Source of the DNA: Takakia lepidozioides
Taxonomy: Eukaryota > Plantae > Bryophyta
Direction: 5' to 3'
NCBI GenBank assembly: GCA_030704615.1
Contig: CM060732.1
Span: 47,120,001-47,184,000 of the forward strand
DNA length: 64,000 bases
The notes under the pieces were generated by a model. It was not told the DNA's origin. It did no database searches and saw nothing but the letters and a program-made list of their open reading frames with translations. Position 1 is the stretch's first letter; every line of letters begins with the position of its first letter. Positions 30,452 to 56,816 of this stretch are shown in pieces. The position numbers and the translations under genes were made by a program.

Positions 30452-31397
30452 ATGCGCAAAGCATAAGCCTATATATTAAAAATCCTATCAAGTGTTGAAG
30501 TATACTGTCTAGTAAATTAGCTGAAGTACAATCAAATGGTGTAAAAAATGTCAGCATGTGTATAATGTGTAATGGTATCTGTTTATGAGTCCGATTACAT
30601 GGGTCTTTCCAATACCCAAACCAGATCCCTGTACATTTGGCCCAGAAATTCGCAAAGACTGCTACTGAATAATATGGATGAAAACATGACCATTTTTTCT
30701 TGGGCAGCATGATAATGTTTTTTTGTTTTGTTTTGTTTTCCCCCTGCATTTCAGGTTTTCCGTCCCTTTCTTTGTTAAAAATATTCATTTAATGTTATAT
30801 ATATATATATCAGTTCTTGTTATTTATACTTCAAAATGCTACTAGTACAAATCAATGAGTCAAGATTGGAAAATAAATAAATAAATAAATAAAATTGTAC
30901 TCATCTCTCAACAACCTCATTAGTTCTTCATTCTTTCAGTTAACTTAGTTGCTCTCTCAAGACCTGTATTGCTGACCAAGGCCATCTAGCGGATATGTTC
31001 TCTTTTCAGCTGATAGGGCCCACCCCTGAAAAGGGGCAGTAGCCTCAAGTTGAAGTGACTCTTAGTTAGCTTCGGCATGAGTCTTTTCACGGTGTGTCAC
31101 CCAATCATCTTGGTGTATCCTTCATGGACCCCCACATGGTTATTTTTCCATGTTTATTAATATGAATTACAGGGGGAAGATAATAAGAATAATGTAAGAA
31201 CTTAATGCAAGCGCGTCAGGACGGTCCAGCCTTGACACCCGTACCGCCGGTTCTTCGCCTCCGGCAAACATCGAAAGGCAGCCGGCTGGGCTCGGTCAAT
31301 CCCTCCCCACCCCCGCCCTCATCCCATCGGCGTCGTCGCCCCCTGCGTCGTCCTTCTGCGACACCAGTCCGCCGCTTCCAGCAGTCCGCCAATTCCC

Positions 31398-34300
31398 TGT
31401 AACCCCCGCCCCGGGTTCAACCATCACCCCCATGTAACCCTCTGTAACTCCGCCGAGTGTAACCCACATTACCATGTAACCCTTTGTAACCCATATAACC
31501 CCATGACCCTCTGTAACCCATGTAACCCTCTATAACACCGCAGAGTGTCACCCCCACCCCTATGTAACCCTCACTACATGTAACCCTCTGTAACCCATGT
31601 AACCCTCTATAACACCGCAGAGTGTCACCCCCACCCCTATGTAACCCTCACTACATGTAACCCTCTGTAACACTTTGCAACCCATGTAACCCTATGTAAC
31701 CCTCTGTAACACCGCAGAGTGTCGCCCTCACCCCTTATGTAACCCTCACTCCATGTAACCCTATGTAACCCTCTGTAACACCGCAGAGTGTCGCCCTCAT
31801 CCCTTATGTAACCCTCACTCCATGTAACCCTCTGTAACCCATGTAACCCTCTGTGACCCTTTGTAACCCTCACCACCATGTAACCCTCTGTAACACCGCA
31901 GAGTCTCACCCTCACCCGTATGTAACCCTCATTCCATGTAACCCTCTCTGACCCTCTGTAACCCTCACTCCATGTAACCCTCTGTGACCTCTATATCCCT
32001 CACCAGGTGTAACCCTTACCTCCATGTAACCCTCTGTTACATAGGTTACAGAGCCACAGAGGGTTTGTGAGGGTTACATGGAGTGAGGGTTACATGGTGG
32101 CGAGGGTGACATTCTGCGGTCTGTAACACCGTAGAGTGTCGTCCTCACCCCTTATGTAACCCTCTGTAACCCATGTAACCCTCTGTGACCCTTTGTAACC
32201 CTCACCACCATGTAACCCTCTGTAACACCGCAGAGTGTCACCCTCACCCCTATGTAACCCTCACTCCATGTAACCCTCTCTGACCCTCTATAACCCTCAC
32301 CACCATGTAACCCTCTGTAACCCATGTGACCCTCTATATCCCTCACCAGGTGTAACCCTTACCACCATGTAACCCTCTGTAACACCGCAGAGTGTCACCC
32401 TCGCCACCATGTAACCCTCCGTAACCCTCACAAACCTTTTGTGACACCGCAGAGTGTCGCCCTCACCCCTTATGTAACCCTCACTCCATGTAACCCTCTG
32501 TAACCCATGTAACCCTCTGTGACCCTTTGTAACCCTCACCACCATGTAACCCTCTATAACACCGCAGAGTGTCACCCTCACCCCTATGTAACCCTCATTC
32601 CATGTAACCCTCTCTGACCCTCTGTAACCCATGTAACCCTCTGTGACCCTCTATATCTCTCACCAGGTGTAACCCTTACCACCATGTAACCCTCTGTAAC
32701 ACCGCAGAGTGTCACCCTCGCCACCATGTAACCCTCCGTAACCCACACAAACCCTCTGTGACACCGCAGAGTGTCACCCTCATCCCCATGTAACCCTCAC
32801 TCCATGTAACCCTCTGTGACCCTCCGTGGCTCTGTAACCCATGTAATCCTCTGTAACACCGTAGAGCGTCACCCTCACCCCTTATGTAACACTCACTCCA
32901 TGTAACCCTCTGTAACCCATGTAACCCTCTGTGACCCTTACCCTCTGTAACCCTCACCACCATGTAACCCTCTGTAACCCATGTAACCCTCTGTGACCCT
33001 CTATATCCCTCACCAGGTGTAATCCTTACCACCATGTAACCCTGTGTAACACCGCAGAGTGTCACCCTCGCCACCATGTAACCCTCCGTAACCCTCACAA
33101 ACCCTTTGTGACACCGCAGAGTGTCGCCCTCACCCCTTATGTAACCCTCACTCCATGTAACCCTCTGTAACCCATGTAACCCTCTGTAACCCATGTAACC
33201 CTCTGTGACCCTTTGTAACCCTCACCACCATGTAACCCTCTGTAACCCATGTAACCCTCTATGACCCTTTGTAACCCTCACCACCATGTAACCCTCTGTA
33301 ACACCGCAGAGTGTCACCCTCATCCCTATGTAACCCTCATTCCATGTAACCCTCTCTGACCCTCTGTAACCCTCACCACCATGAAACCCTCTGTAACCCA
33401 TGTAACCCTCTGTGACCCTCTATATCCCTCACCAGGTGTAATCCTTATCACCATGTAACCCTCTGTAACACCGCAGAGTGTCACCCTCGCCACCATGTAA
33501 CCCTCCGTAACCCTCACAAACCCTTTGTGACACCGCAGAGTGTCGCCCTCACCCCTTATGTAACCCTCACTCCATGTAACCCTCTGTAACCCATGTAACC
33601 CTCTGTAACCCATGTAACCCTTTGTGACCCTTTGTAACCCTCACCACCATGTAACCCTCTGTAACCCATGTAACCCTCTGTGACCCTTTGTAACCCTTAC
33701 CACCATGTAACCCTCTGTAACACCGCAGAGTGTCACCCTCACCCCTATGTAACCCTCATTCCATGTAACCCTCTCTCACCCTCTGTAACCCTCACCACCA
33801 TGAAACCCTCTGTAACCCATGTAACCCTCTGTGACCCTCTATATCCCTCACCAGGTGTAATCCTTATCACCATGTAACCCTCTGTAACACCGCAGAGTGT
33901 CACCCTCGCCACCATGTAACCCTCCGTAACCCTCACAAACCCTTTGTGACACCGCAGAGTGTCGCCCTCACCCCTTATGTAACCCTCACTCCATGTAACC
34001 CTCTGTAACCTATGTAACCCTCTGTGACCCTTACTCTCTGTAACCCTCACCACCATGTAACCCTCTGTAACCCATGTAACCCTCTGTGACCCTCTATATC
34101 CCTCACCAAGTGTAATCCTTACCACCATGTAACCCTGTGTAACACCGCAGAGTGTCACCCTCGCCACCATGTAACCCTCCGTAACCCTCACAAACCCTTT
34201 GTGACACCGCAGAGTGTCGCCCTCACCCCTTATGTAACCCTCACTCCATGTAACCCTCTGTAACCCATGTAACCCTCTGTAACCCATGTAACCCTCTGTG

Positions 34301-36248
34301 ACCCTTTGTAACCCTCACCACCATGTAACCCTCTGTAACACCGCAGAGTGTCACCCTCACCCTTGTGTAACCCTCATTCCATGTAACCCTCTCTGACCCT
34401 CTGTAACCCTCACCACCATGAAACCCTCTGTAACCCATGTAACCCTCTGTGACCCTCTATATCCCTCACCAGGTGTAATCCTTATCACCATGTAACCCTC
34501 TGTAACACCGCAGAGTGTCACCCTCGCCACCATGTAACCCTCCGTAACCCTCACAAACCCTTTGTGACACCGCAGAGTGTCGCCCTCACCCCTTATGTAA
34601 CCCTCACTCCATGTAACCCTCTGTAACCCATGTAACCCTCTGTAACCCATGTAACCCTTTGTGACCCTTTGTAACCCTCACCACCATGTAACCCTCTGTA
34701 ACCCATGTAACCCTCTGTGACCCTTTGTAACCCTCACCACCATGTAACCCTCTGTAACACCGCAGAGTGTCACCCTCACCCCTATGTAACCCTCATTCCA
34801 TGTAACCCTCTCTCACCCTCTGTAACCCTCACCACCATGAAACCCTCTGTAACCCATGTAACCCTCTGTGACCCTCTATATCCCTCACCAGGTGTAATCC
34901 TTATCACCATGTAACCCTATGTAACACCGCAGAGTGTCACCCTCGCCACCATGTAACCCTCCGTAACCCTCACAAACCCTTTGTGACACCGCAGAGTGTC
35001 GCCCTCACCCCTTATGTAACCCTCACTCCATGTAACCCTCTGTAACCTATGTAACCCTCTGTGACCCTTACCCTCTGTAACCCTCACCACCATGTAACCC
35101 TCTGTAACCCATGTAACCCTCTGTGACCCTCTATATCCCTCACCAAGTGTAATCCTTACCACCATGTAACCCTGTGTAACACCGCAGAGTGTCACCCTCA
35201 CCACCATGTAACCCTCCGTAACCCTCACAAACCCTTTGTGACACCGCAGAGTGTCGCCCTCACCCCTTATGTAACCCTCACTCCATGTAACCCTCTGTAA
35301 CCCATGTAACCCTCTGTAACCCATGTAACCCTCTGTGACCCTTTGTAACCCTCACCACCATGTAACCCTCTGTAACCCATGTAACCCTCTGTAACCCATG
35401 TAACCCTCTGTGACCCTTTGTAACCCTCACCACCATGTAACCCTCTGTAACACCGCAGAGTGTCACCCTCACCCCTATGTAACCCTCATTCCATGTAACC
35501 CTCTCTCACCCTCTGTAACCCTCACCACCATGTAACCCTCTGTAACCCATGTAACCCTCTGTGACCCTCTATATCCCTCACCAGGTGTAATCCTTACCAC
35601 CATGTAACCCTCTGTAACACCGCAGAGTGTCACCCTCGCCACCATGTAATCCTCCGTAACCCTCACAAACCCTTTGTGACACCGCAGAGTGTCGCCCTCA
35701 CCCCTTATGTAACCCTCACTCCATGTAACCCTCTGTAACCCATGTAACCCTCTGTGACCCTTTGTAACCCTCACCACCATGTAACCCTCTGTAACACCGC
35801 AGAGTGTCACCCTCACCCCTATGTAACCCTCATTCCATGTAACCCTCTCTGACCCTCTGTAACCCTCACCACCATGTAACCCTCTGTAACCCATGTAACC
35901 CTCTGTGACCCTCTATATCCCTCACCAGGTGTAATCCTTACCACCATGTAACCCTATGTAACACCGCAGAGTGTCACCCTCGCCACCATGTAACCCTCCG
36001 TAACCCTCACAAACCCTTTGTGACACCGCAGAGTGTCGCCCTCACCCCTTATGTAACCCTCACTCCATGTAACCCTCTGTAACCCATGTAACCCTCTGTA
36101 ACCCATGTAACCCTCTGTGACCCTTTGTAACCCTCACCACCATGTAACCCTCTGTAACACCGCAGAGTGTCACCCTCACCCCTATGTAACCCTCACTCCA
36201 TGTAACCCTCTCTGACCCTCTGTAACCCTCACCACCATGTAACCCTCA
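31398..36248 (+). repeat. Left subterminal array, ~4.85 kb of TGTAACCC-based higher-order repeats
   Basis: Modules CATGTAACCCTCTGTAACC, ACACCGCAGAGTGTCACCCTC and CACCACCATGTAACCC repeat in higher-order blocks of several hundred bp. Confidence 0.97.
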
Positions 36249-36589
36249 GTATCACCGCCTCGTGTACATCATACACGTGTAAACTATCCGACGGCCGAAT
36301 GGAGGTTTAAATAGAGGCCGAAACCCTAATTTGCTCTCTCCATCCGTTTCCAGATTCTTAGCTCGCTCGTTTTTTTGCTTTGGGGCATCAGCTTTCTGCA
36401 ATTCCCATGGTGCCCAATCGGCTTCACACATCAATGCGAAAGATTTGTAGTTCATTCAGTTCAGTATCGTCATCCCAGCAACATACAAGACAACGCTTTC
36501 CGTGCAACGATCCGTCAAATTTATTACCACGATTTTCTCTACGATTGATACAGTTGTCTCTATTCTTTTTCTTTCTCAATGTCATTCTT

Positions 36590-36760
36590 GTTGTTTTGTC
36601 ACCGTCCCCGATGGCTATGGTATTCCTAAGATCCGCATTAGGAAAGGGTTTTGTTTCTTTCGGTCTAGCCATGCAAGCAGCCGCTCATTTGACGGGGTGC
36701 CCATTCACTCTCCTCTCGTGTATCTTTTGTTCACACACCAGCCGGGGCAGCCTACTCATC
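36590..36760 (-). pseudogene. Inverted, decayed paralogous fragment of the zinc-knuckle exon of the cargo gene
   Basis: Minus strand reads ERRVNGHPVK*AAACMARPKETKPFPNADLRNTIAI, against KSRLNRHIVDGTAACMARPKGTKPFPDAELKHAMAV at 37780-37890. Confidence 0.8.
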
Positions 36761-37569
36761 GCTATTATGGATGCAATACGTATCGAATCATGCGTGTTTT
36801 GCAAGCACTGTCAACCGGTTACATGTCTGATGGTTTATATGACTACCTCACGTGTGGTATGGTTACACACAGGGGGTTACACGGTGTTTTCTTTCTCAAT
36901 ACATGCTAGCTTGGTAGACGGTTTAGTAATGGAGGTTTAGATGGGTTGACATGTTTGATGGGTTACGTGGATGTTGCGCTCGCGGAGCCACATAGGCTAG
37001 GGTTACATGGGTGGGGCATTACATTGACCATGTTTACCTGGAGGTTGCATACTAATGGTTTGATATGACAGGGTTACATCGATGTTGTGTTCGGGAGTCA
37101 CATAGACTAGGGGTACATGAGGTTGTGACGAAGGGTTACATCATATCTGGGTACCTGACGGAGGGTTACACTCGACGTGCCTGGCATTCGAGTAACGGCC
37201 GGTTTGTCGCGCTCACAAGTGTAGGGTTACGGGTTACACTCCGCTATTCCGGGTGACACCGGGATTGCAACTCATACACGTGTGAGTCAGTGCGGATATA
37301 ATTGATTGCAAGCCGCCAGATTTTAATGAACCGCCGTCTTTCGCTTAACCGACGTGCCTTACGGGTGACATCTAGCTAGCTTCGTTCTTCGTTCTTTGAT
37401 CATTGTTCAGTTTTCCCCTTCTCGCAGCCATTCATATTCTTCCTGCACTCCTTGCTGTGCGTGCTCCCTGTTGTGCGTTCTTCGGAATTCTCTTGGTCTT
37501 GGTCTTTTCTTGTCTTGTCTTTTCTTGCTCTTGCTCTTCTCTTCTCTTCTGTCAGCTTTTTCTTTTGTC

Positions 37570-40500
37570 ATGGCTGATTGTTATTTGTTCCCTGGAGAGG
37601 CTACTATTCCATTTGATCACTTGAAAAGGGATGGCGAACGAGTTCGCTTTTGGTACACTGAGCATGAGCATGCTACAATGATCGCGTACTGCCACACCAG
37701 GTGTAGAGAGGCCAAGGTGGAGGGAGCAAAGGGCCGGCCTAAGTTCAAATGTCCTTATTGTGGGGCAGTAAAGGTAGATAAGAGCAGATTGAATCGGCAT
37801 ATTGTCGATGGAACGGCCGCATGTATGGCCAGACCGAAAGGAACAAAACCGTTTCCTGATGCGGAGCTCAAGCATGCCATGGCTGTTGAAAATGTGATGA
37901 ATTCTGTTCCAGCTTCTTCTGTTGATGCATATCATGCATGGATTCTGCAAAATAGGGTGGCTTTGGGTGAGATTGCAGATCCTATTGAAGTGCCTGCTGT
38001 TGTACCTTCTTCGGCTATTTCTGCTACAGAGGTTCCATCTTCTAGTGCTCCTGCTGTTTCTGTCCCTGGTCCTTCTATTCGGCAGGTTTCTAACGAGAGA
38101 GACAAGCGGCGATTGAGCCCGCCTCTACCTGTCCCTATTGCAAAGAAAATCAACATTGGAAACCGGGGAAACCGGAGCTCAAGGTTCATCTTGCGAAAGA
38201 GAACTCCAGGCTCAATCCTTCTGCTACCGCATGGCCTTATTCCTCAGTTCCCATTTCCGAATGTCAATGAGAAGGGGTTTTGGCCGGCATTCCAAGAATT
38301 TGTTGCGCGAGGCGAGGGCGCAGTCCATGCGACAGCTGCAAAATCAAGTTGGGTTCTATCGACAGACAATCAAGTTGGATTCCCTGCCATTTCTCTGTTT
38401 TTCAAATTTTGGGCTGTTGTCTATCCATGTAACCCTTTGTGTTACCCCCCTGTCTCTCCTGTGGCGTGTAACCCAGAGTGTAACCCACCTACAGAGGACC
38501 CCTTTTAAAAACCCCTATGGTGTGTAACCCACCTCTGTGTAACCCCGTGTAGCCCATCTTGTTTGTAACCCATTTTCATGTGTAACCCCTCGTGCTGTAA
38601 CCTTTTTCTCTGGTGTAACCCCTCACGCTGTATTGCGCAGGGAGGTCGATATCATCTTAGAAGCGATGATATGGACAGTGTTGTTGCTGCCCACAAGGCA
38701 TTTACTGCCCAGCCGGATCATGGTCCGTTAATGATAGAGGAATTGAATCGGGTGAAGGAGTATTTAGAGAGCATTGGGCATCCTGACATGCCAAAGCAGA
38801 AAAAGAAAAAAGGTGGGAGACTTACACGAGTCCATCGAGAGAGCCAAGCCTCACATGATGATGACACGATGGACGAACTAGCTGTTGGCAATACCGACCT
38901 TGACGATGCCAGAACTTCAAATCCTCTTGTCATCACTATTACTGTAGATGGAATCAAAGGTTTGGTTGTTCCACATCCGTTGGAATTCACTCGTGGTTTT
39001 GCCGAAGGATTGATCAGTCAAATGGAGAATCTCACCAAACCGCACATTGGACCGCCACCACTCCTTTTGAGAATTCTAGCCCACAACGATGTAAGAAATC
39101 ATGGCAGGTCAGTTTCCCAAACGCATCCCAGGTTGGGGTTCACGACTGAACTTCTGGAAAGTGCTCTTACGGCCTCAAAGGTGAAGGACCTGGTCGATGA
39201 GTATTACGGCTTTAGTCTGATGTACTTTGCACAACCTGGTGACGGAATTGCGACCTTGGATTCTGAGCTCGAAGACTTAAGATCGAGTTTGAGTACAGAA
39301 GAGTGGGGTGACCGGTCAATTAAGATCAACGGAGCTATACAGTTTTGCAAGGCAAGCCGTCGTCGCGCCGCCCATCACTTTGCGATCCAACAGAGAGAAT
39401 CGTTTATCCAGCTTTGGTGTTGTGGCCTCTTCAGCGAATCACCAACAGAAATGGACTTCAATGCGCGTTTGGGCATCCAGTATATGAGAGACCTTGGGTC
39501 TGTAGTGCCTTGGTATCTCTGTAAGTGTTACTCCATCCACTGTCACCCCTCTCGTCGTGTAACCCCTTTGTGTGTAATCTTGTAATCATTGTAACCCTCG
39601 CTATGTGGAACCTTGTAACTCAGTGTAACCCTCGTTGTGTGGAACCTTGTACTCAGTGTAACCCTCGCTGTGTGTAAATCAGTGTAACCCTCGGAGTATG
39701 TAACCCTGTAATCAGTGTACCCCTAATGGTACCCCTCGCTGTGTTACCCTAGATTTGTTACCCTCTCGTTGTGTAATCTCAGTAGTGTAACCCATTGCAA
39801 ACTACTGTCTCTAACAGGGTGGTGTAACCCATATCGTGTAATCCGAACCACTGTCTTGTCCTAGTCAGTGTAACCCTTACATAGTGTAACCCTTGCACTT
39901 TCAAAAACCTCGTTCCACGACTAAAAACCTTTGTCTTTTCCCCGATGCAGATGAGTCCGAGCTCATGACCAATCAAGTCGCCAATGCGTTCAAAAACCTT
40001 TTTGAGGCTCAACGTGAGCTTCACGAAGTTGTGTATGGGGCCCCTCCACAATGCGATACAGGGGGCGTAGGGGGCGCGCAGACGAGCGATGGGCCAATTT
40101 CCGCCCCGCAGAGCGACGATGTACATGACGAGGACATCATTCCAAGTCAATCTGCCGTTGTATCTTTGTCGCAGGTTGGTGAATTGTACTCAACCCAGCT
40201 GCACTTAGGGGTGAACCTAGCAGACTTGACGCGGGATTTGCCCATGATTTCTGATACTGATACTGAAGATGATACATCAAGGTGGAACACCCAAGTGCGA
40301 ACCTCTTTGTCCGCAGCCCCAGTCATTTCTTTTGAAGGTCTTAATCGAAGAATCGGGGACCCGCTTGACCCAGAGTCTGTGTATGACTTTGAATCTGGAG
40401 ATGCTGGGTTGAACCCTCGATGCAGCAATGTAAGTATTTGTCAGGATCATGTGGTCAACCTCTCTCAGAATGACCCAGCCTTCGTGGGTCCCATTGATGC

Positions 40501-43180
40501 GCAGGGTGACTCTGCAAGGGGAGGATGCCCTGAAACCGAGGGTTACACTGCACCTGAGGGTGACACTGTGCAGAGAGGAGCAACATGGAAGGAGGGTTAC
40601 ACTGCACCTCAGGGTGACACTGTGCAGAGAGGAGCAACAGGGAAGGAGGGTTACACTGCACCTCAGGGTGACACTGTGCAGAGAGGAGCAACATGGAAGG
40701 AGGGTTACACTGCACCTCAGGGTGACACTGTGCAGAGAGGAGCAACAGGGAAGGAGGGTTACACTGCACCTCAGGGTGACACTGTGCAGAGAGGAGCAAC
40801 AGGGAAGGAGGGTTACACTGCACCTCAAGGTGACACTACGGATACCGGTGTGGCTGACAATGGTGAGGGACATTGTCGTGGGTGACACACCATTGCCCGT
40901 GAACACTGCAACTTCCGTTGAGAGTGACATTGACATGGGTTACACTGATAGGGGTGACACCCCACAGCCAACCCACATGGTAGATGTCAGTGAGTGTAAC
41001 ACTGTCATGGATGACATTCCACTACCACTAGTCGTGGAAGGTGACACTCCTTTGCCACGGCCACTAGTCGCGACGGATGACGGTCTTCTGCTAGTCAACA
41101 TGGTCTTGGAGGGTGCGGAGAAGGGCGACACAAACAAGGATGGCATTGAGGAGGTTGATGCAAAGAAGAGTGACATCGACATGGGTGACACGGGGAAGGG
41201 TGTCACCGAGGAGGTTGTCAGTTGGAAGGGTGACACAAAGCAGGGTCACACTGAGAAGCGTTTCACTGTGGAGAGTCACGAAGAGAAGGATGTTGCGGAG
41301 CATCTAGACACTGAGAAGAGTGACACTGCCAAGGGTGACACACATAAGATTGTTACTCAGCAGAGTGACACTGGGAAGGAACCCGATGAGAAGGGTGACA
41401 CTGCGAAGAGTGACACTGATAATGCGGCCAAAGAGAAGGGTGACACTGAGAAGGTAGCCGGAGAGAAGGGCGACACTGAGATGCGTGACTCTGAGGAGGT
41501 AGCTGAAGAGAAGGGTGACACTAAGAAGAGTGACACTGAGGAGGTAGCCGAAGAGAAGGGTGACATTGAGAAGGAAGCCGAAGAGAAGGGTGACACTGAG
41601 AATCGTGACACTGAGGAGGTAGCCGAAGAGAAGGGTGACACTAAGAAGCGTGACAAGGGGTTTGAACAGAAGGGTTACACTGACAGGGGTAGCACCGAGG
41701 AGGTGAGCTGTGACACTTCTGCCCTTGGTCAATCACCTCCCCAGCACGTCTCAGACGAGGGAGTGCAGTCTTCAGCACTTGCAGCAAACTCAGAAAAGGC
41801 ACCTCTGGCTCAGAAATTCCCCCTATCGGCGGCATTGTCAGGGTTGCAGAGAATCCCAGGAGGTCAAAACGGCCGCCTGCTCAAAGAAAGCGGTTGGCTG
41901 AACCCCCTAGCGCTGACAAAGAAGTATCTGTTCTTGTCGCACCCAAAAAACAGCGAACCAAACCGAAAGGCAAAAGTGCAGGGGTCTCGGAGGTTGACGT
42001 TGTCCAGCAGCAAGAGGTCCTTGCCAAGCACTTGCGGGAGCGTTCGAGGTACCTCATTGTACTTTGATCCTCTCTGATTTTGAATATTGATTATAACTCT
42101 TGTATGATGCATCGTAATGTTCGTAATGTGCGGTTTGTTGTGCAGACTAAAACAACGGTACTTGACAAAGTTCAGAATGGTGTCGGACCCTCCTGGGGCG
42201 CCCGAAGTGAAGTTTTATTATGGCGATGCCTTCCTGGCTTCTAGTCCGTTACAGTTTTACTTGGAAGAGACAGATTTTGAGCCGATGTATAAAATAAGAG
42301 CAACTGTCACAGATGCATTGCTCTCGGGTTACAACAAACTTCTGGAGGCCAAATTGTTTAAGGCTATCGCACCTGAGTTTGTCATCTGTGCTCCTTTTCA
42401 ATGGCATGTCATGCGTACCAATGGTAACGATCTGCAGACGCTATTCGGGTTGGTGCAAGAATGGTACACTCAGGATGCCCGAGGGATGGTGTTCACAAAG
42501 AATCGAGATCTTGTGGACGTGGTTGTCATCCCTATTGTCTTCGAGTAAGTAATTTCAGCATTGACTGAGCATGTTGGGTTACACTCCTCTATTCTAGACT
42601 GAGTTGCACTAGTGACTGCTGACTAGTTGTGTAACACCGTTTAGAGTTACAGTACAAAGGGTTACACTACTGGGTTACACCACAGCCGGTTACACCACAA
42701 TGGGTTTCATTGGAGATGTTTTTTTCTATTCTGACGTAACGGCTTTGTTTGTGTTGCAGTGATCACTGGAGTGTTGCTGTTTTAGAGCGCCGAGGTCGGA
42801 TAGTACATTTGGACTCCCATAAAACCATTGCCCGACCCAAACTCATTGAAGGAATTTTGCGAAATTTTGCCATAGCGTTCTTTGATTTCATGCCTGGATC
42901 TGATGACTTCAGTTACGTCATGGAGAGGATGGAATGGTTTGAGGCCAGTGTCCCCCAACAACGGAGCTGTTGGGAGTGCGGCTATTATGCACTTTGTTTT
43001 GTGCAATTTTACTTGGAGTGGAAGTTCAATGTGAAAACCACAGAAGATCGAACCCGTCATAGGCGGGCGTTTACTGCAAGTTGGTTCAACGAGTCAACCA
43101 TGATAGCTTCCCGTACTCATATGATTAGTTGGCTGTGTGACGAGATGGACAAAGACTTGGTCAGATGGCCAAAGAAATAA
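37570..43180 (+). CDS. Transposon cargo gene: N-terminal zinc-finger-like motif, acidic KGDT-repeat linker, C-terminal Ulp1/SENP-like (C48) cysteine protease; two apparent frameshifts
   Basis: Phase-compatible exons 37570-38373, 38641-39520, 39951-42048, 42146-42544 and 42760-43180. FKCPYCG..RLNRH motif. Protease catalytic residues in IPIVFDDHWSVAVL (H), HLDS (D) and QQRSCWECGYY (Q, C). Frame switches near 40865 and ~41780 cancel each other. Confidence 0.85.
40538..40836 (+). repeat. 54-bp in-frame tandem repeat (5.5 copies) encoding EGYTAPQGDTVQRGAT(G/W)K
   Basis: Unit gagggttacactgcacctcagggtgacactgtgcagagaggagcaacagggaag, containing two copies of the element's GGGT(T/G)ACAC motif. Confidence 0.95.
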
Positions 43181-44528
43181 ATAGCGTCTCTTGATGCATT
43201 TTTGCTTCTATGTGGTTTGTTCGTAACACTTCACAGTTTGGGTTTCATGCAATGGGCTTACATGGGGTTACACCTTATAAGGTTACATGAAGTGGAATCA
43301 TAGACAAGTACTTGGGTACACCTTTGGGCCCTGGGGCAATGGGCTTACACTCTGTGGGTTCACACATAAGTGATGGGTTACACCATGCCGGGTCTCACAA
43401 CGTGGGGTTACACTTATGGGTTACATACCTGGCTATGTCAGGGTCACGTTGCTGAAACAGTATACTTTCGTGGCATGTAACCCCACCTCGACTATGCGCA
43501 TTTGTTTTATTTTTTATTTTTTTCGCACTGAAGTGTTTGTGCACTGAAGTTCTCAGATTTATACTACATGGGGTTACATACATGAGGGCTATGTACAATG
43601 GGTTACATACGATGGGGTCACAATAGTGTGGGGTAACATCTGGTCGGGCTACATACTTCTTGGAGTTACAACACTCTGGGTTACACTCACTCAAGAGGGT
43701 TACACAGTTCTAAGTTACACTGTGCACAATGAAAGTGGGCAGGGTTGCCTATACAAGGGCTACGTGTCGTGGGGATACATAAGATGGGGTGATGTAGCAT
43801 CGGGGTTTATAGCGTGCACCCCAAATTGTACAATGGGTTACATGCGATGGGGTGACATCAATGGGGGTTACATGTGGTCGGGATACATACTTCTTGGGGT
43901 TACACAACAACAAGTTACACTCCGGAGGGCTACACTGGTCCATAACATAGGTTGAACGGAATGATTATCTATCTCATGGATTACACGTCCATGGGTTACA
44001 CACAAATTGGGTTACACATAGAGGGGTTACACATACAGGGGCTAGTGTTGGTGACTAAAGGTGCTCGACTTCAACATCTTCCCACTCTGTATTGAAGGGT
44101 CATGTAACCCCGGCAGACTAACCCAGACCCTGTAGTCACATTGTAGTCACATTGTTCTCAGAGTTACACCACTGACAGCAATATTCTATGGGGTTACATA
44201 CTAGGTTACACTGTTGATAGTTACATTGCAGTTACACTTGGAGTTACACCACAATGAGTTACACTGAAGAGGTTCACACTCATCTGTGTTACACTGTGTG
44301 GAGTACCACAGATGCAAGTTACACTAAGTAGAGCTATGTTACGTTATGAAACCCCAGACAGTGTAACCCTGCGGTGTGTCACCCCGGCCCATGGGTGTCC
44401 CATTGAGTGGGTTACATAGGTTGAATGTGGATGGAATGGCAAAGTGAATAACAACCCATGAACAGACATGTACTTCATATTAAACTTGGTGATCACAAAG
44501 TAAGTGTCATTGCCAATGGACTCAATGG

Positions 44529-47500
44529 TCACTTACTACGGAACCGGTCTACAAAATCTACTTTCCTGGCAAGGGACATGTTGTTTCCATCATCATTTTT
44601 TATGAATGGAACTGCTTGAAGAGGGTGCAACAGACCTTTGTCGATTCTAACTTGTAAAGTGGACAGCCTCCCACGAACACAACGAAGCTCGGCAAGCAAA
44701 TGTTTGCGCATTGTTTCACTCTCATTGCCAAGAAGCGACAGGGACTTCATCTCAGATTCAATTGATGAAACATCCGATGGCTCCTGCCGACCACGCCGGG
44801 ATGATGCTGAGCACTCCGTAGGCTCTGCTAGATTCACAACTTCCTCCTCTGCATCAATATCTGGAAGTTCCGATTTCATCAACATGTGAAGACCTCCATG
44901 AATGGTCCCGAGCTTTGTGCCACAGAGCTTCACAATAAGCCCTTCCTTCAGATTTGGCTTCATCAATTGAAGAACGCGGATTTGATGTTTGCACAAGTTA
45001 CCCTTCAAAGCCCATGGACAATCGCAACAAGCCCAGGTGGTCGCAGGTGCATAGATTGTGTAGCTTCGACCGGCCGTTTGAACACTATCCACAATCGCCG
45101 GATGACCAGGAACAGTGGGCAAATGAACATTGACATCAGGGATCTCCCTTGCAGTCCAAACAGCATTACTGATAAATTCCTCCTGTCGTACATTCCTTTT
45201 GAAGCCTTTCGATTTCAAGTTATCTCTATACCAATAGTGGGTTAGAACAGGACCCACGAGTTCGCTGATCAGCCAATCGATTCTCCTGCCATCAAGCCTT
45301 TGCTTTCCCGAGCGTAAACGAGCCTTCAAATTTCCGTGCCAAGATTCATTGCGGCATTAGTATCCTGACTTGCGTGGGGAATATAACGAGCCCCCGTGAT
45401 CCACATGCTCAGTTTTGGGACCCATTCCATTCTGATGTAACGTAGGAAGTCACGCGCAAGCGGATAGGAATAATTCAAATCTTCCAGTCGCTCCAGCGCC
45501 CACTCTTCTGGGGTGACTCCCACACAGGCGTTAATGCCGTACATTACGTCGCCAAGCTGTTTCAAAACAGCATTGCGAGTGTATGGATCGGGCATCTTAC
45601 GCCACGAATGTTTCAGCCAAGCGCGGCGAACATGCCAAAGGCATAGAAATATTGCTACGTCCCAAACGATTCCTGCACGCACACACATCAAATGCCACCC
45701 AATCCATCAGTGTAACTCTTGTCAGTGTAACTCTTATCAGAGGAACTCTTCGCAGTGTAACTCGTAGAAGTGTAACTCTTCAAAGTGTCACTCTTAGTAG
45801 TGTGACTCATGTAACCCCTCGTGCATCTGGTCATGTAACTATCAGTGAAAACTCACAGCAGTGTAACCCAACACATATAACCCCTCGCAGCGCTGTAACG
45901 CAATCCATGTTACACCGTGTAACTCTCAGAGCGACCCAAACCATACAACCCTCTGCGATGCTCCCAGTGTAACTCACATGCTATAGCAGTGCAACCTAAT
46001 CCATGTAGGACTGCGGATGACACGCCGTGTAACTCCCTGTGTAACTCGCAGTGTAACCCTCTGTCTACCTCATAGCAGTGTAACCCTCGGTCTAACTCAC
46101 AGTAGTATAACCCTCGGTCTAACTCACAGCAGTGTAACCCTCCGTCCAACTCAAGGCAGTATAACCATCTGTCTAACTGATAGTGTAACCCTCAGTGTAA
46201 TAGACAGCACTGCAACCCAATCCATGTAACCCCTCGAGCAACTGACAGTGTAACTCCAAGTGTTACAGGCAGCAATGCACCCCTCGTGTAACTGGCAGTT
46301 TAACTCTTACTGTGATTCTCAGTGTAACTAGCAGCAGTGTAGCCCGATCCATGAAACCCCTCGTGCATGCAACTTGTAGTGTGACTCAGAACATTGTAAC
46401 TTCTAGCCGTGTACCTGATAGCATTGATTTCTGCGTCTGCATCGTCGACAACAAAAGCATTTGGCCTCCAATCTGGTTTGCTCTGAAGAAGTCGGTCGCG
46501 AAGACGTTTCATCCAGGGGCTCAAGTCAGTCGTTTTGTTTCTCGCTGATATAATATAAGCAACAGGTATGCCGTTGAGCCATTCGTCGAACACCATCATG
46601 GTATACATTGGGAACTGCAATGTCGCAATGGTACAAAAATGAATAAGGTGAGCGTTAAAATATTGGCAACAGTTGCATGGCACTCACATTTCAGAATGCA
46701 ATGAAAGGTAAAGCGTGACACGAATACCTTATTTTCGTTGGTCCCAAATGTTGCATCGCAGGATACCACACGGTTGTGTCCCAAGTCGATCATTTTCTGT
46801 TTTTGCCACTCCGTTTGTATTCCAATTACGAACTTCAAATCACCCGCCACTGGCGCTGTCTCTTCATGGTAGAAGAAGACGCTTTCAGGATTGCTATTGA
46901 CCACATACGTACACTTTGTGCATCATCTGGATGTTTTTTGTAACTCTCAATCGCAAGCTTGTCGGCAATGTTTCTCACGTCGTACTCGAACAAGAAACAA
47001 TCGCGACTCCACTCCATGCCTGGCTGAGACGCACAAGCTTCCTGGAGTTGTTGAGTGTGTTGTGTCATAATCATAGCTGGAGATAGGCCACTGCGAAGAC
47101 TATCGACGATCCACTGTTTCATATCTTGGCTGAGACGAGGGGCATGCACGAATCGCGAGAAATGGGAAGAGGGGTCAGCTGAACCATGACATGGCTTTCC
47201 TTTTGCATCCACATGCTGTTTCTGGAAGTATGTGATGATTGCCAACTCTGAATCTAGAAAACACTGGCCAACTTTGAAGCTACACGTACACCCACGTTTG
47301 TATGACTCTCCGAAATCCGCTGCCTTACGTCTGATTCGCTTGACTGCTGTTTGATTATCGGAGGCTGCTATCGGTTTTTCTTTTTTCTTCACAATCGGCG
47401 GGTCCGTGCGCCTATCTATCGGGCGCGTAGCAGCAGTGGTACCTGCAAAAAAAGCATATAAAGCGAGGAGGGTTATCGCCATATACGACTTTGCTAGACT

Positions 47501-47935
47501 AGCAGAAAGAAGTGGGGCTGGGAATGTTATACAACCCTCATAAGTGACTTACTTATGCCACTGACGATAACTGTTTGCACGCGGGTGTTGTCAAATCTGG
47601 CAACTCACGGTACCTTCGATCTTGAACATAAAATTGGGTCTTCCCATCCACTCTACTCCTTTCTCCCTCCAGAAAGTCAGGAATGCGAGACCATGGAACG
47701 ACAGCTACTTCGATGGATATCCGTTTCCCTTTCCCTGGGAAACGGGAAACCTGCGTATCCAACGGAGGTTTGTGTGATTGAAAAGCCCGTCTATGGGCAG
47801 CTGTAGGATGCATTTCAAATGAGATACCAAATGCTGCAAATGACAGAGTTCTCCCGCCTCATCTTTCAAACCATTTGATTCCAATGCTGCTTTGCGTTCC
47901 TCGTCTAGCACTTCGCGGCAGGCAGCACATGCCAT
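44529..47935 (-). CDS. MULE (Mutator) DDE transposase with SWIM zinc finger, 4 exons, several 1-nt frameshifts
   Basis: Exons approx. 47935-47554, 47441-46728, 46614-46415 and 45672-44529. Motifs KRGCTCSF..HVDAKGKPCHG, CDATFGTN (D1), FVVDDADAEINAI (D2), FLCLWHVRRAW (CxxH), DTNAA(I)ESWH (E, across a frameshift) and SWIM CDCPWALKGNLCKH. Confidence 0.93.
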
Positions 47936-48469
47936 AGCCAAGCGCAACAATACCACCAGTACAAGTACAAATCGCATAACACGCGGGCAACGCGCGGAGC
48001 CCTCGGGACTGCACGTCGTCTACGCACCTGGTGTGGAAAATGACGAGCGATGATGGAGTTACACGTGGGTTTTGATGTCACCGAATCGTGTAACCCAGGT
48101 TTGAATTCAAAATATCTGACACCTCTTGGAGCCCGCCAATTTTTGCCGGGCACTAAGGGGCTACACGAACAGGGGTGACATGCGTTGGGATAAAGGATCC
48201 GGGGTGACACGAGCTATGAGTGACACAATCGGGGGTTACACGGGGGGGGATTGATAACAGTATTGGGGTACATGGTGGGGTTACAATGTGAGAGTTGCAC
48301 AATGGGGTTACACGAGGCGGGGCTAAGCGCTGCGTGCAGAGGGTTACAAGGGGATATGGGGTACCGGAGGACTGGCAGGTCCACGGAGAGGGGGTATATG
48401 GGATAACATGATACAAGCTTACATTGGGGTTACACGATGCAGGAAACATGGAGTGAGGTTACACCTACG

Positions 48470-50530
48470 CGGGAAGCGAGTAGTGAGGTAACAGAGGGTT
48501 ACATGGGTGTTACAAAGGGTTACCAGGAGGGAATGGAGGGTTACATGGGTTACAGGAGGGTGACCTGGGTTACATGGGGAGGGTACATGGAGTGAGGGTT
48601 ACACCAAGGGTTACATGGAGTGAGGTTACACAGGGGTGAGGGTGACACTCTACGGTGTTACAGAGGGTTACTGAGGGTTACATGGTGGTGAAGGTTACCC
48701 TGGTGAGGGTTATAGAGGGTCACAAGGGTTACATGGGTTATAGAGGGTCAGAGAGGGTTACATGGAGTGAGGGTTACATGGGTTTACATGGGTTACACAG
48801 GGTCACAGAGGGTTACACGGTTACGCAGGGTCACAGAGGATTACATGGGTTACAAGGAGTGAGGGATGCATAGGGATGGGGGTGACACTCTGCGGTGTTA
48901 CAGAGGGTTACATGGTGGTAAGGGTTACACCTAGTGAGGGATATAGAGGGTCACAGAGGGTTACATGGGTTACAGAGAGTTACAGAGGGTCAGAGAGGGT
49001 TACATGGAGTGAGGATTACATAGGGGTGAGGGTGACACTCTGCGGTGTTACAGAGGGTTACATGGTGGTGAGGGTTACAAAGGGTCACAGAGGGTTACAT
49101 GGGTTACAGAGGGTTACATGGAGTGAGGGTTACATAAGGGGTGAGGGTGACACTCTACGGTGTTACAGAGATTACATGGGTTACAGAGCCACGGAGGGTC
49201 ACAGAGGGTTACATGGAGGGAGTGAGGTTACATGGGGATGAGGGTGACACTCTGCGGTGTCACAGAGGGTTGTGAGGGTTACGGAGGGTTACATGGTGGC
49301 GAGGGTGACACTCTGCGGTGTTACAGAGGGTTACATGGTGGTAAGGGTTACACCTGGTGAGGGATATAGAGGGTCACAGAGGGTTACATGGGTTACAGAG
49401 GGTCAGAGGGTTACATGGAATGAGGGTTACATAGGGGTGAGGGTGACACTCTGCGGTGTTATAGGGTTACATGGTGGTGAGGGTTACAAAGGGTCACAGA
49501 GGGTTACATGGGTTACAGAGGGTTACATGGAGTGAGGTTACATAGGGGTGAGGGCGACACTCTGCGGTGGTCACAAAGGGTTTGTGAGGGTTACGGAGGG
49601 TTACATGGTGGCGAGGGTGACACTCTGCGGTGTTACAGAGGGTTACATGGTGGTAAGGGTTACACCTGGTGAGGGATATAGAGGGTCACATGGTTACAGA
49701 GGGTTACATGGTGGTGAGGGTTACAGAGGGTCAGAGAGGGTTACATGGAGTGAGGGTTACATACGGGTGAGGGTGACACTCTGCGGTGTTACAGAGGGTT
49801 ACATGGTGGTGAGGGTTACAAAGGGTCACAGAGGGTTACATGGTTACAGAGAGGGGTTACATAAGGGTGAGGACGACACTCTACGGTGTTACAGAGGGTT
49901 ACTAGGGTTACAGAGCCACAAGGGTTTGTGAGGGTTACATGGATGAGGGTTACATGGTGGGTGAGGGTGACACTCTGCGGTGTTACAGAGGGTTACATGG
50001 AGTAAGGGTTACACTGGTGAGGATATAGAGTCACAGAGGGTTACATGGAGTGAGGGTTACAGAGGGTCACAGAGGGTTACATGGAATGAGGGTTACATAC
50101 GGTGAGGGTGACACTCTGCGGTGTTACAGAGGGTTACATGGTGTTGAGGGTTACAAAGGGTCACAGAGGGTTACAGGGTTACAGAGGGTTACATGGAGTT
50201 AGGGTTACATAAGGGGTGAGGCGACACTCTGCGGTGTTACAGAGGGTTACAGGGTTACATGGTTGCAAAGTGTTACAGAGGGTTCATGTAGTGAGGGTTA
50301 CATAGGGGTGGGGTGACACTCTGCGGTGTTAAAGGGTTACATGGTTACAGAGGTTACATGTAGTGAGGGTTACATAGGGGTGGGGGTGACCCTCTGCGGT
50401 GTTATAGAGGGTTACAGGGTTACAGAGGTTCATGGGGTTTATATTGGTTACAAAGGGTTACATGGTAATGTGGGTTACACTCGCGGAGTTACATGGGGGT
50501 GATGGTTGAACCCGGGGCGGGGGTTACAGG
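48470..50530 (-). repeat. Right subterminal array, ~2 kb of GGGTTACA-based repeats, inverted relative to the left array
   Basis: Reverse complement of the left-array modules. The outer part is colinear with 31398-32900. Confidence 0.97.
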
Positions 50531-52194
50531 GAACTGGCGACTGCTGGAAGCGGCGGACTGGTGTCGCAGAACGACGACGCAGGGGGCGACGACGCGCCTG
50601 GGGCGACGACGCCGATGGATGAGGGCGGGGGTGGGGAGGGATTGACCGAGCCCAGCCGGCTGCCTTTCGATGTCTGCCGGAGGCGAAGAACCGGCGGTAC
50701 GGGTGTCAGGGCTGGACCGTCCTGACGCGCTTGCATTAAGTTCTTACATTATTCCTATTATCTTCCATTACAGGGCCTCGGTCCCCTTTGATTTTTAAAA
50801 AAAGGATTGTAAACAGAGATCAATGATAAGCAGGGCAGGTCAACCTAACCAAACCTATTGTTGATAACGAGGAGGGAGGAAGAGAGAGGAACCGAACGCG
50901 ATCAGTGTCAATCAATCAGCAAAGATGTCGGTGATACTTTACATACATCGCGCTTACTTCCACAGGAGTCAACTTTCGATAATCGGACATCTTAAATGTC
51001 GTGGATCCAGTTCAGCTTCCCTGTCTAAATTTCTATAATGGGAGGTTAAAGAAAGGAGGTTGGCCTGCTTCTATTTTATGTTTGCATCACAGCGGATTCC
51101 ACGTTTTGTAAACATTTTAGACAGTAGTGTGATTGCGTGCAACAATGTACCGCCACAAGAAAGAGGCAAAAAGTCTAGAGATTCGGTGGGGATTCGGTCA
51201 CTGTTGAAGCACTGGATTGCTGAGTACATTTTTTTGGGTTAGTTTTCTGGCGGCGCACGTGCCAAATGGCAGCCATGGCAAATCTTCGGAGAGACAAAAG
51301 CAGTGTATAGACAGGGAATCGAGGCATGCATTGTGGAACTCCAAGTGGGCAACTGTGAACCACTCTATGATTTGATGCCGCCTGCCTTTTTGCAATGATC
51401 GAATAATCCCTCACTTTCCACCCACTTCCTCTCCGTGGGTTTTTTGTTTGGAGCACTGATATAGCATTGGGGCCACATGCAAAGTCGCACTCAGATTTAG
51501 AGGGAAAAAGTCAGATGCTAGATCTCTTGTCGCTGATGCCATCTTTTTCTGGTGAAAACAATTCAAACCCCACATTTCAAGAGTTTTCTATGATTTCTGT
51601 TTTGTGCAATCTGTTGACACATCCTGCAAAGTGGTTCCTGTGACATCAAGCTGCTGCCATAATCATGTATCTTGTGGAATCAGGTGTTACAGGACGAGTT
51701 CGCATTCCATGACACAAGTCGTTTGCCCAACTCCATTTTCTGGTCACCAAAGAATTGACAATTCTCATCTTTGGAGACTCTCGTTTAAGCAGCACGCATC
51801 CTGTCATGCATTTTGCTTGGTTCACCAGGTACTCCTAGAAGAACAAGCCCGTCTTCAAAGTGGCAAACACAGTTGGCACCCATACGACAATTCATGCTAT
51901 CCCAAAACCTTCGAGATGACCTTGGTAGTGTGGCAGGAGTCAACACACACCTGAAGGTCCTTGATGCTATGGACAGGTGCCAGGGGGTGCACATGTCAAT
52001 GAGCCCAAAAGCATGGCCAGCCTCTCACTACAGTGTTCCCATGCAATACAAATTGAGTGTCGGGCAGGTACTTGGTCTCCATCCACCCAAACAATCTTCT
52101 TAGCTCAGCATGGATTTCCTTAAATGCACAGTACATGACAAGGTGAGGTAGCAGGATGCGCCACAAAAGCATCATGTAAAGGTAAGGGCCAAGG

Positions 52195-54251: not shown

Positions 54252-56816
54252 TCACCAGTAATCTCCACACGAACAAATCCCATCTTGGAAGTGGTGAAAT
54301 CGGGTGGCATCCCGCACCACAACTGCTCGCCCAACAATCTTAGAAATGAACTTAGTGGCTGTGTGGCAGTCACCACACACCCGCAGATTCTTGATGACCC
54401 GTATATCCGTGCCAGGGGGAGTGCTGATGAGCCCAAAAGCAATGGCCAGCTTTTCACTGTGGTGGCCAAGAGAAAGTTCCTGTTGCTCCTCCTCCACATC
54501 ATGCAACACAAAGCTTGTGTTGGGCCTGTACCCGACTTTCTTCATCTCCACAGACAATCGCTTCAGCTCAGAATGGATTTCTTCAATTTGTGGATGTGAT
54601 TTGTCTTCAACAACAAATGTATGCACCCAGTTGTCCACCTCAATGTAGCTGTGACCTGGCTCCTCCTTTCTCACTCCTCTCTCCTCCATCATTTCTCTCA
54701 CCTTTTCTCTATCATCCCACCTGCCAGCTGCGGCGTAGATGTTTGATAACAGCACATAGGCTGCCGGGTGTTGTGGATCATACTTCAGGATGCTTTTTGC
54801 AGCACGTTCTGCTAGCTTCACATCACCATGAATTCTGCAGGAACCAAGCAAGGCCCGCCATAATGAAGCATCGGGTTTGATTGGCATTTTGTGAATGATG
54901 TCCTCTGCCTCATCCAGTTGCCCTGCACGGCCGAGGAGGTCCACCATGCAGCCAAAATGGTCTACAGTAGGTGTAAGGCCATGATCTTGACTCATGGAGT
55001 CAAAATAGTGACAGCCCTCATGCACCAGGCCCGCATGACTACATGCAGACAACAAAGATAAGAAGGTAATACCATTGGGTTTCAAGCCTTTCTCTTGCAT
55101 TTGTTCAAACAGTTGGAGCGCCTCCCTACCACATCCATGATGGCCATATCCTGCAATCATTGCACTCCATGAGACCAGATTTCTTTTAGCCATCCTGTTG
55201 AACACTTGACGTGCATCCTTTACACTGCCACATTTGGCATACATGTCGAAAATGGCAGTCTCCAAAATAATATCTGGTGCAATTACAGCATTGATGATTT
55301 CAGCATGGACCTCCTTGCCCTTTCCCAGGGCACCTAAGCTGGCACATGCATTAAGAATGCAAATGAATGTCACCCTGTTGGGGGTCACCCCCTCCTGTTG
55401 CATCTGCTCATAGATCTTGAAAGCCTCCCTACCACACCTGTGCTGAGCATATCCTGCTATCATTGCACTCCAGGAGACCACATCTCGGTTTGCCATCTCA
55501 TCAAACACTTCCCGTGCATCCTTTAAGCTTCCACATTTGGCATACATGTCTACAAGGCTATTCTGCAGATTTATGTATGACTTAATTCCAGATTTGATGA
55601 TCAAATCATGGACCTCTTTGCCCTTTTCCAACACTCCTAGTCTCGCACATGTATTGAGAATGCAAATAAGTGTGACCTTGTCAGGAGACACCCCTTCCCG
55701 TTGCATCTGCTCAAAGGTCTCGAAAACTTCCCTACCATACCCATGTTGCACATATCCTGCAATAAGGGCGTTCCAAGAAATTACATTTCGTGTAGCCATA
55801 TTGTTGAACACTTGACATGCATCCTCAATGCTCCCACATTTTGCATACATGTCAACAATGGTAGTCTCCAGAAAGATGTCTAACACAATTCCAGATTTTA
55901 AAATGTCAGTATGGACCCGCTTGCCCTTTTCAAGGCTCTCTAGATTGGCACATGCATTGAGGACACACATGAACGTGACCCTGACTGGAGTCACCCCTTC
56001 TTGTATCATCTGCTCATAGAGTCTGAACACCTCCTCAGCATTCCCACCCTTTGTACATCCTGCAATCATGGCATTCCACGAGACTACATTTCGCTTGGCC
56101 ATTCTGTTGAAGACTTGACGGGCATCCTTTAAATTCCCACATTTGGCATACATGTCAACAAGGGTAGTCTCCAACATAATATCCATCACAATTCCACTTT
56201 TGATAATATCAGCATGAATCTGCTTGCCCTTTTCGACGGTTCTTAGGCTGGCACATGCATTAAGAATGCAAATGAATGTGACCCTGTCCTGGGTCACCCC
56301 TGCCCTTTGCATTTTTTTATAGATTTTGAAAGCGTCCTCAGCATGTCCTTGCTTGGCATATCCTGCCACCATCATAGTCCATGTAAACATATCTCGTTCA
56401 GGCATTTTGTCAAATACTTGCCTTGCATCCACCATGCTCCCACACTTGGCATACATGTTAATAAGGCTGTTGACTAAAAAGAGGTTTGGTGTGAATTCAC
56501 TTTGGATCATGTGAGCATGCACCTGCTTTCCCTGTGCCAGGGCTTTCAGGTTGGTACACCACTGCAAGAGATAGTGGTAAGTATTGGAGTCCACACGAAT
56601 GTCTTGTTGGTGCAGTCTTTGCAGGGCCTCTGTCAGTTGCCCCTCCTTACAGAGTGCCTTAATATCAGAAGAGTTCTTGTTGACTCCCTCTCTTTGTCTT
56701 CTTTCACAAGAATCGGTGATGGTGGAGATGCTACCCCTGCCAGTAGCCTGATTTCCAACAAAGAAATGTGGCTCATTCAACCCTGCCATCCTGTATGACT
56801 CAAATTTCTCAGTCAC
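54252..56816 (-). CDS. PLS-class pentatricopeptide repeat protein with E1-E2-DYW domains (organellar C-to-U RNA-editing factor)
   Basis: Uninterrupted ORF with 17 PPR motifs, (L-S-P)x4-L-S-P2-L2-S2. PG box EPGHSYIEV, deaminase motifs HSEKLA and CGDCH, C-terminus CSCGDYW. The start codon is uncertain (first ATG ~56790, or an upstream exon). Confidence 0.97.

Follow-up and report, generated by a model that had tools for sequence, protein, structure and literature searches.

A foldback Mutator-like element in the moss Takakia lepidozioides whose kilobase arms carry a putative self-recognition word

Why should a transposable element carry kilobases of G-rich, telomere-like repeats at both of its ends? 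The question is raised by a 64,000-nucleotide stretch of the moss Takakia lepidozioides (contig CM060732.1, positions 47,120,001 to 47,184,000; hereafter the window), in which a first-pass annotation had described a young, giant Mutator-like element (MULE) and had read its arms as minichromosome-like ends. The analysis given here points to another answer. The element is a young foldback C48-MULE, and the word repeated in its arms, (G/A)GT(T/G)ACA, is a putative binding site of the element's own protein.

The element is flanked by an exact 9-bp target-site duplication (TSD), ATTACAGGG, in direct orientation, within the 8-11 bp typical of Mutator and MULEs. The element itself is thus real, although the span 31166-50775 given previously counts both TSDs; the element proper runs from 31175 to 50766 (19,592 bp). 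Both terminal inverted repeats (TIRs) begin with GGAAGAT. At each end the outermost 220-236 bp are GC-rich, unique sequence without the word; together with the mirrored arrays behind them they form the long TIRs known from Mutator elements. Over the outer ~860 bp of the arms 752 of 763 aligned bases match, the other 11 being substitutions (~98.6% identity). The perfect TSD, the near-identical tips and the description as a young, large foldback-type MULE are therefore borne out. Foldback-type elements have such modular TIRs, in which subterminal tandem repeats, varying in number, come after a terminal segment. The parts of the element are as follows.

31166-31174, no strand: left TSD (ATTACAGGG).
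31175-31394, plus: left TIR tip, ~220 bp, non-repetitive and motif-free, starting GGAAGAT.
31395-36250, minus (G-rich strand): left motif array, 204 copies of GGGTTACA, the inner ~3 kb being recent higher-order copies.
32037-32124, plus: ~88-bp block inverted in place within the left array.
36251-37569, plus: 5' region of the accessory gene, with a telobox at 36321 and a motif cluster at ~36860-37260.
37570-38373, plus: inferred accessory exon 1, C2HC-type zinc finger.
38641-39521, plus: inferred accessory exon 2, domain without Pfam or Atlas match.
39951-42048, plus: inferred accessory exon 3, an acidic linker that contains 54-bp and 45/75/120-bp repeats; the frame is broken by single bases near 40870 and 41850.
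42147-43180, plus: accessory exons 4 and 5 (42147-42545 and 42761-43180), Ulp1/peptidase C48.
43181-44528, no strand: spacer between the two 3' ends, motif at 24/kb.
44529-47813, minus: MULE transposase in four inferred exons (~47813-47553, 47448-46730, 46618-46412 and 45672-44529), with single-base frame breaks in the assembly.
~48150-50530, plus: right motif array, 79 copies of GGGTTACA, inner ~0.4 kb degenerate.
50531-50766, minus: right TIR tip, motif-free.
50767-50775, no strand: right TSD.

One line of evidence for the interpretation is the distribution of the word. It occurs at 47-48/kb in the arms and at 19.4/kb in the interior introns and spacers, as against 0.33/kb in the non-repetitive exons and 0.5-0.7/kb in the flanks. 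Within each block it stands nearly always in one orientation, and the direction switches between blocks; the introns are filled in both orientations. The interior copies are dispersed and non-tandem, lie in separate introns and have differing neighbours. A family-specific word that is dense in the non-coding parts, and that changes from clade to clade as described below, is the pattern known from the VANDAL elements and their VANC proteins.

The arrays begin ~220 bp inward of each tip. The length of 4.85 kb reported previously for the left array agrees with the 4.86 kb found here in the assembly, but the right array is ~2.4 kb rather than ~2 kb when its degenerate inner part is included. Neither is a simple repeat: modules of 9-43 bp are arranged within higher-order units of 255-438 bp. 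The two arms mirror each other module by module only in their outer ~1.7-2.1 kb. The surplus of ~3 kb in the left arm consists of about nine higher-order copies of 255-438 bp, mostly 0.2-2% apart. Since GGGTTACA occurs once in 44 kb of flank, the arrays are far beyond chance.

The element encodes two convergent genes, the exons of which were searched separately, piece by piece. The transposase has the DDE residues and the CLWH and SWIM motifs (CDATF, VDDA, CLWH and AIESWH in the sequence). Pfam returned SWIM (E 7e-4) and MULE (E 0.04) on separate pieces, each falling just or well short of the curated cut-offs; the combination of MULE DDE transposase, CxxH and SWIM is nevertheless present, and relatives carry PF10551. 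The protein is 35-45% identical to proteins from metagenome assemblies and is related to fern and Riccia proteins; its best match, at 99%, is a Logan contig of run SRR15431198. The accessory gene has five exons, placed by splice words and phases, and its product comprises a C2HC finger, a domain without a match, an acidic repeat linker and an Ulp1/C48 domain. The last scores 22.9 bits with PF02902, above the cut-off of 20.7, and retains the catalytic His-Asp-Cys and Gln; a second gene with this domain characterises C48-MULEs. The motif in exon 3 lies in tandem repeats coding GYT and GDT peptides. The ESM Atlas gave nothing usable for exon 2 and only unnamed clusters for exon 1, and a single-sequence fold of exon 2 (pLDDT 40) was too poor for a structure search. 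The sole true telobox of the window, AAACCCTA at 36321-36328, lies just inside the left arm in what is likely the accessory-gene promoter.

Some of the reading frames are broken, and short reads of the same species suggest why. An Illumina contig of SRR15431198, a T. lepidozioides sample from Haida Gwaii (PMC9021317), is 99.6% identical to window positions 44509-46102, and the window shows three single-base losses and one gain in these 1.6 kb. A second contig of the run, also 99.6% identical, covers 37161-38699 and reveals one single-base loss in 1.5 kb. Of these losses, three lie within the last transposase exon or at its border; in the Illumina contig this exon reads open. Further small frame shifts were seen by eye near 40870, 41850, 46900, 47420 and 47590. 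Single bases are also missing at 18 places in the right arm and 2 in the left, losses of the long-read type. Most of the breaks are probably long-read errors, and the family probably has intact frames.

Is the word peculiar to Takakia? For comparison, 80 metagenome loci with related transposases were retrieved together with 7 further ones; most are taken, from their context, to be mosses. Relatives with ~30-50% transposase identity are enriched for ATGTTAC, TGGTTAC or ATGTTTC inside the element and not in the flanks. GTTAC, for example, was observed 44 times in L003 and 50 times in L004 where 14.5 were expected for each, with no excess in the flanks. The word of L007 is TGGTTACA, ATGTTTC is found in a large group of relatives, and L055, L061 and L062 have weaker or different words. 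A maximum-likelihood transposase tree was built with 54 rows after leaving out loci shorter than 2.9 kb, rows with more than 110 gaps and near-duplicates above 97%. The 15 rows labelled ATGTTTC form one clade with support 100/100, where shuffled labels require a mean of 13.3 changes. GTTAC is the top word in all eight rows around L003, four of these being short contigs below threshold. The Takakia row lies outside the ATGTTAC clades, so its GTTAC is ancestral or convergent.

The complete relatives are 4-11 kb long and have plain TIRs of ~130-650 bp without kilobase arrays, although short-read contigs would tend to break at such arrays. They share the convergent gene order and a similar C2HC finger (profile E 0.005), and some carry a domain matching the Ulp1 of the window (phmmer E 9e-4). 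L064 retains the motif without the accessory gene and may be a deletion derivative. A conserved, all-helical domain of ~300 amino acids was seen in the accessory genes of the relatives (L004:12843-13754, minus strand, and alignment A2, with 116 homologues). Its model is confident (pLDDT 88), yet structure searches matched coiled coils only and no match was found in Pfam, PDB or the Atlas, so that no VANC domain was recognised in it. Its match to exon 2 of the window is weak (hhalign probability 2.7%, E 0.017). In L020, L028, L033, L036, L039 and L040, 45-bp tandem repeats with ATGTTTC lie in or near the transposase gene, a repeat-driven accumulation like that in VANDAL introns. The related MULE at L044:6957-17214 has a 10-bp TSD and unequal tips of ~8-9 bp outside its TIR.

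The ends of the relatives also bear on how the Takakia element is delimited. A TIR starting with G, taken previously as a Mutator hallmark, is not fixed in this clade: the tips at L003:10905-10916, L004:6836 and L005:91 and 10563 start CCCTAAC, their 3' ends thus reading GTTAGGG, one telomere-like unit. ATTACAGGG was accordingly considered as the true right tip of the Takakia element. This was rejected because the left copy is directly oriented, no other TSD is present and the relative L064 has a GGAAAATG tip. The TSD at 31166-31174 differs by one mismatch from a common arm word, as near as ~5% of flank 9-mers, and the likeness may be chance or target preference. Searches with the TIR tip in the JGI metagenomes and of Rfam gave no match.

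Taken with the words of the relatives, the distribution suggests that the word would be bound by an element-encoded protein, either the transposase's N-terminal domain or the accessory protein with its C2HC finger and Ulp1 domain; the two candidates were weighed about equally. Recruitment of element-encoded proteins was among the options raised for the arrays at first, and it is the option these sequence comparisons favour. If more copies mean more protein binding, sites would build up in all places that coding constraint leaves free. Slippage or unequal exchange could have multiplied those of the arms, first as modules and later as higher-order repeats, with copying to both ends, the left arm afterwards gaining its ~3 kb. 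Arm sites would serve in transposase loading and end pairing as in Muta1 of Aedes, the subterminal repeats of which bind transposase and raise excision when present in more copies (PMC5499845). Those in introns and spacers would help the element to activate itself or to counter silencing, as happens in VANDAL/KIU and AtMu1. The KIU genes are Ulp1-carrying VANC genes and act via non-coding motifs (PMC13317346), and the AtMu1 transposase alone binds, demethylates and activates its own copies (bioRxiv 10.64898/2026.08.24.746577). Because arm and interior sites share one word, a single binder could serve both jobs.

Several observations weigh against self-binding. The 280 sites of the arms far exceed the needs of end pairing. 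Their kilobase length may therefore have overshot neutrally, and recent unequal exchange probably accounts for it better than need does. Long TIRs feed silencing siRNA, and the VANDALs have lost theirs (PMC10398659); long TIRs therefore fit an anti-silencing role poorly. DUF1985, DUF287 and PMD are absent from the Pfam matches of the window exons and of 77 relatives. L002, L043, L044 and L074 show no motif, and the transposase exons of some relatives are not clearly free of it. The clustering of words on the tree can also arise by plain shared descent and is no proof of a binder.

The reading proposed at first, that the arms mimic telomeres and guard excised linear DNA as minichromosome ends, either by binding TRB/TRFL proteins or by folding into G-quadruplexes, now appears very improbable. 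Its appeal is evident. GGTTACA is the core of the fission-yeast telomere repeat, some relatives end GTTAGGG-3', and the C-rich strand does read inward from each 5' end as was stated, although any inverted array would match this polarity in one case of two. However, TTTAGGG is the telomere repeat of all bryophytes analysed (PMC10856949), and, measured against this repeat of other bryophytes, the 7.2 kb of the arms contain a single TTAGGG and neither TTTAGGG nor a telobox. The arrays are not at the extreme ends, and lying ~220 bp inside they cannot form a 3' overhang. The word also fills introns in both orientations, and no Myb domain is among the Pfam matches of the element. Relatives keep a GTT(A/T)C core without the three Gs, so the G-run that gives the telomeric look appears to be a Takakia-lineage variant of a family-wide core. 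The proposed fit to a G-quadruplex holds for the formal G3 pattern, found 28 times versus 3.2 in shuffles, but folding is predicted to be weak. The G4Hunter mean of the arms is 0.81, that of TTTAGGG 1.29, and windows scoring above 1.2 are fewer than in shuffled sequence; the ViennaRNA G-quadruplex term is ~-1.3 versus -8.4 kcal/mol (RNA parameters, a rough guide). The loops, stated to be 5-7 nt, are mostly 6-7, 13-14 and 22 nt, and sum to ~20 nt.

It could instead be argued that no protein reads the word now, and that a slippage- or conversion-prone word has simply run away, expanding the arms without selection and seeding a satellite. The asymmetry of the arms and the very recent origin of the left excess agree with this, Tetris offers a precedent for satellite seeding (PMC4079207), and such a process is probably true of arm length even if the word is functional. 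For the word itself we regard it as unlikely, given that it does not account for the non-tandem copies scattered over separate introns beside different neighbours, for the fact that exons almost lack the word, or for a core conserved across distant relatives. A host factor recruited by the element to stay active, such as a chromatin or transcription factor, would account for a core kept across mosses whose accessory proteins barely align; but the word changes between element clades and is not enriched in host flanks, and this explanation seems distinctly improbable. It is also very improbable that the surplus of ~3 kb in the left arm, or the inversion, arose as an artefact of assembly. The assembly is error-prone at this locus, but the higher-order copies vary in module order, length and substitutions, unlike a duplicated read, and the outer portions of the two arms match in mirror image, one module after another. 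An artefact would in any case alter lengths only and leave the motif biology unchanged.

How does an element with a self-binding word, as favoured here, compare with known systems? It is a C48-bearing foldback MULE that is VANDAL-like by layout but departs from VANDALs in two respects, its TIRs and its lack of a recognisable VANC domain. Foldback MULEs such as Aedes Muta1, nematode Tm1 and Arabidopsis FARE also have a MULE transposase, a 9-bp TSD and, behind a terminal motif, subterminal tandem repeats whose number differs between the two ends (PMC5225508, PMC3169594, PMC5499845). Muta1, however, has a 145-bp TIR with 9 repeats, whereas in Takakia the two arms measure 2.6 and 5.1 kb and hold some 80 and 200 sites, arranged in higher-order units; here the word also fills the interior and a second gene is present. 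The arms exceed the range of 20-1479 bp found for TIRs of active plant MULEs in 1007 genomes (PMC12973397). In the C48-MULEs, or Kaonashi (KI-MULE), a second gene likewise carries peptidase C48, and most clades have TIRs (PMC4948706). These were described from flowering plants, and the Takakia Ulp1 differs in being joined to a C2HC finger and an unmatched domain and in accompanying a different transposase clade. The VANDAL VANC/KIU systems of Arabidopsis share a short, family-specific word that is dense and co-oriented in introns and spacers, is built by tandem repeats and differs between sister families, and an accessory protein with tandem peptide repeats and Ulp1 (PMC5735166, PMC13317346). 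They differ in having degenerate TIRs, where those of Takakia are very long and near-identical, and DUF1985/DUF287, not found by Pfam in the Takakia element. The likeness of its Ulp1 gene to KIU is one of layout.

Elements bearing telomere repeats have a G-rich repeat near their ends in telomeric polarity, as here. In the ciliate TBE it is the true telomere repeat of the host, at the very end. The same applies to the Penelope-like Terminons (PMC6431247), whereas the Takakia element has another word, placed inside its tips.

Each of the three, foldback MULEs, C48-MULEs and motif saturation of the VANDAL type, is thus already known. Literature searches did not find the three combined in a moss, arms longer than 1479 bp or a motif series across MULEs of bryophyte type. 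VANC-type self-recognition has been described from flowering plants, mainly Arabidopsis. We offer, tentatively and as something less probable than not, the idea that mosses evolved MULE self-recognition independently of Arabidopsis VANC, with an accessory protein, made up of a C2HC finger, a domain that matches no known fold and Ulp1, reading a clade-specific word. In Takakia this word would have been amplified into kilobase arms, one site serving to recognise the ends and also to evade silencing, the long TIRs notwithstanding. The natural series GGGTTAC, TGGTTAC, ATGTTAC and ATGTTTC on the transposase tree offers a way to tell which of the two proteins reads the word and to follow co-change of protein and site. 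In the Takakia copy a putative self-binding site may have expanded into kilobase arms and higher-order repeats, which would be an early stage on the way from transposon to satellite.

Other features lie on both sides of the element. Positions 1-1290 hold a tandem array whose ~116-119-bp units have a palindromic core, and a piggyBac-type transposase reading frame lies at 8925-10205 (Pfam DDE_Tnp_1_7, E 4e-51). Farther on, 13138-13674 and 15778-19268 contain a fragment of a reverse transcriptase and parts of a gene for an ABC transporter. Beyond the right TSD is a divergent pair of PLS-class PPR genes (54252-56816 and 59208-61499) with ~75% mutual identity, one of which has E and DYW domains.

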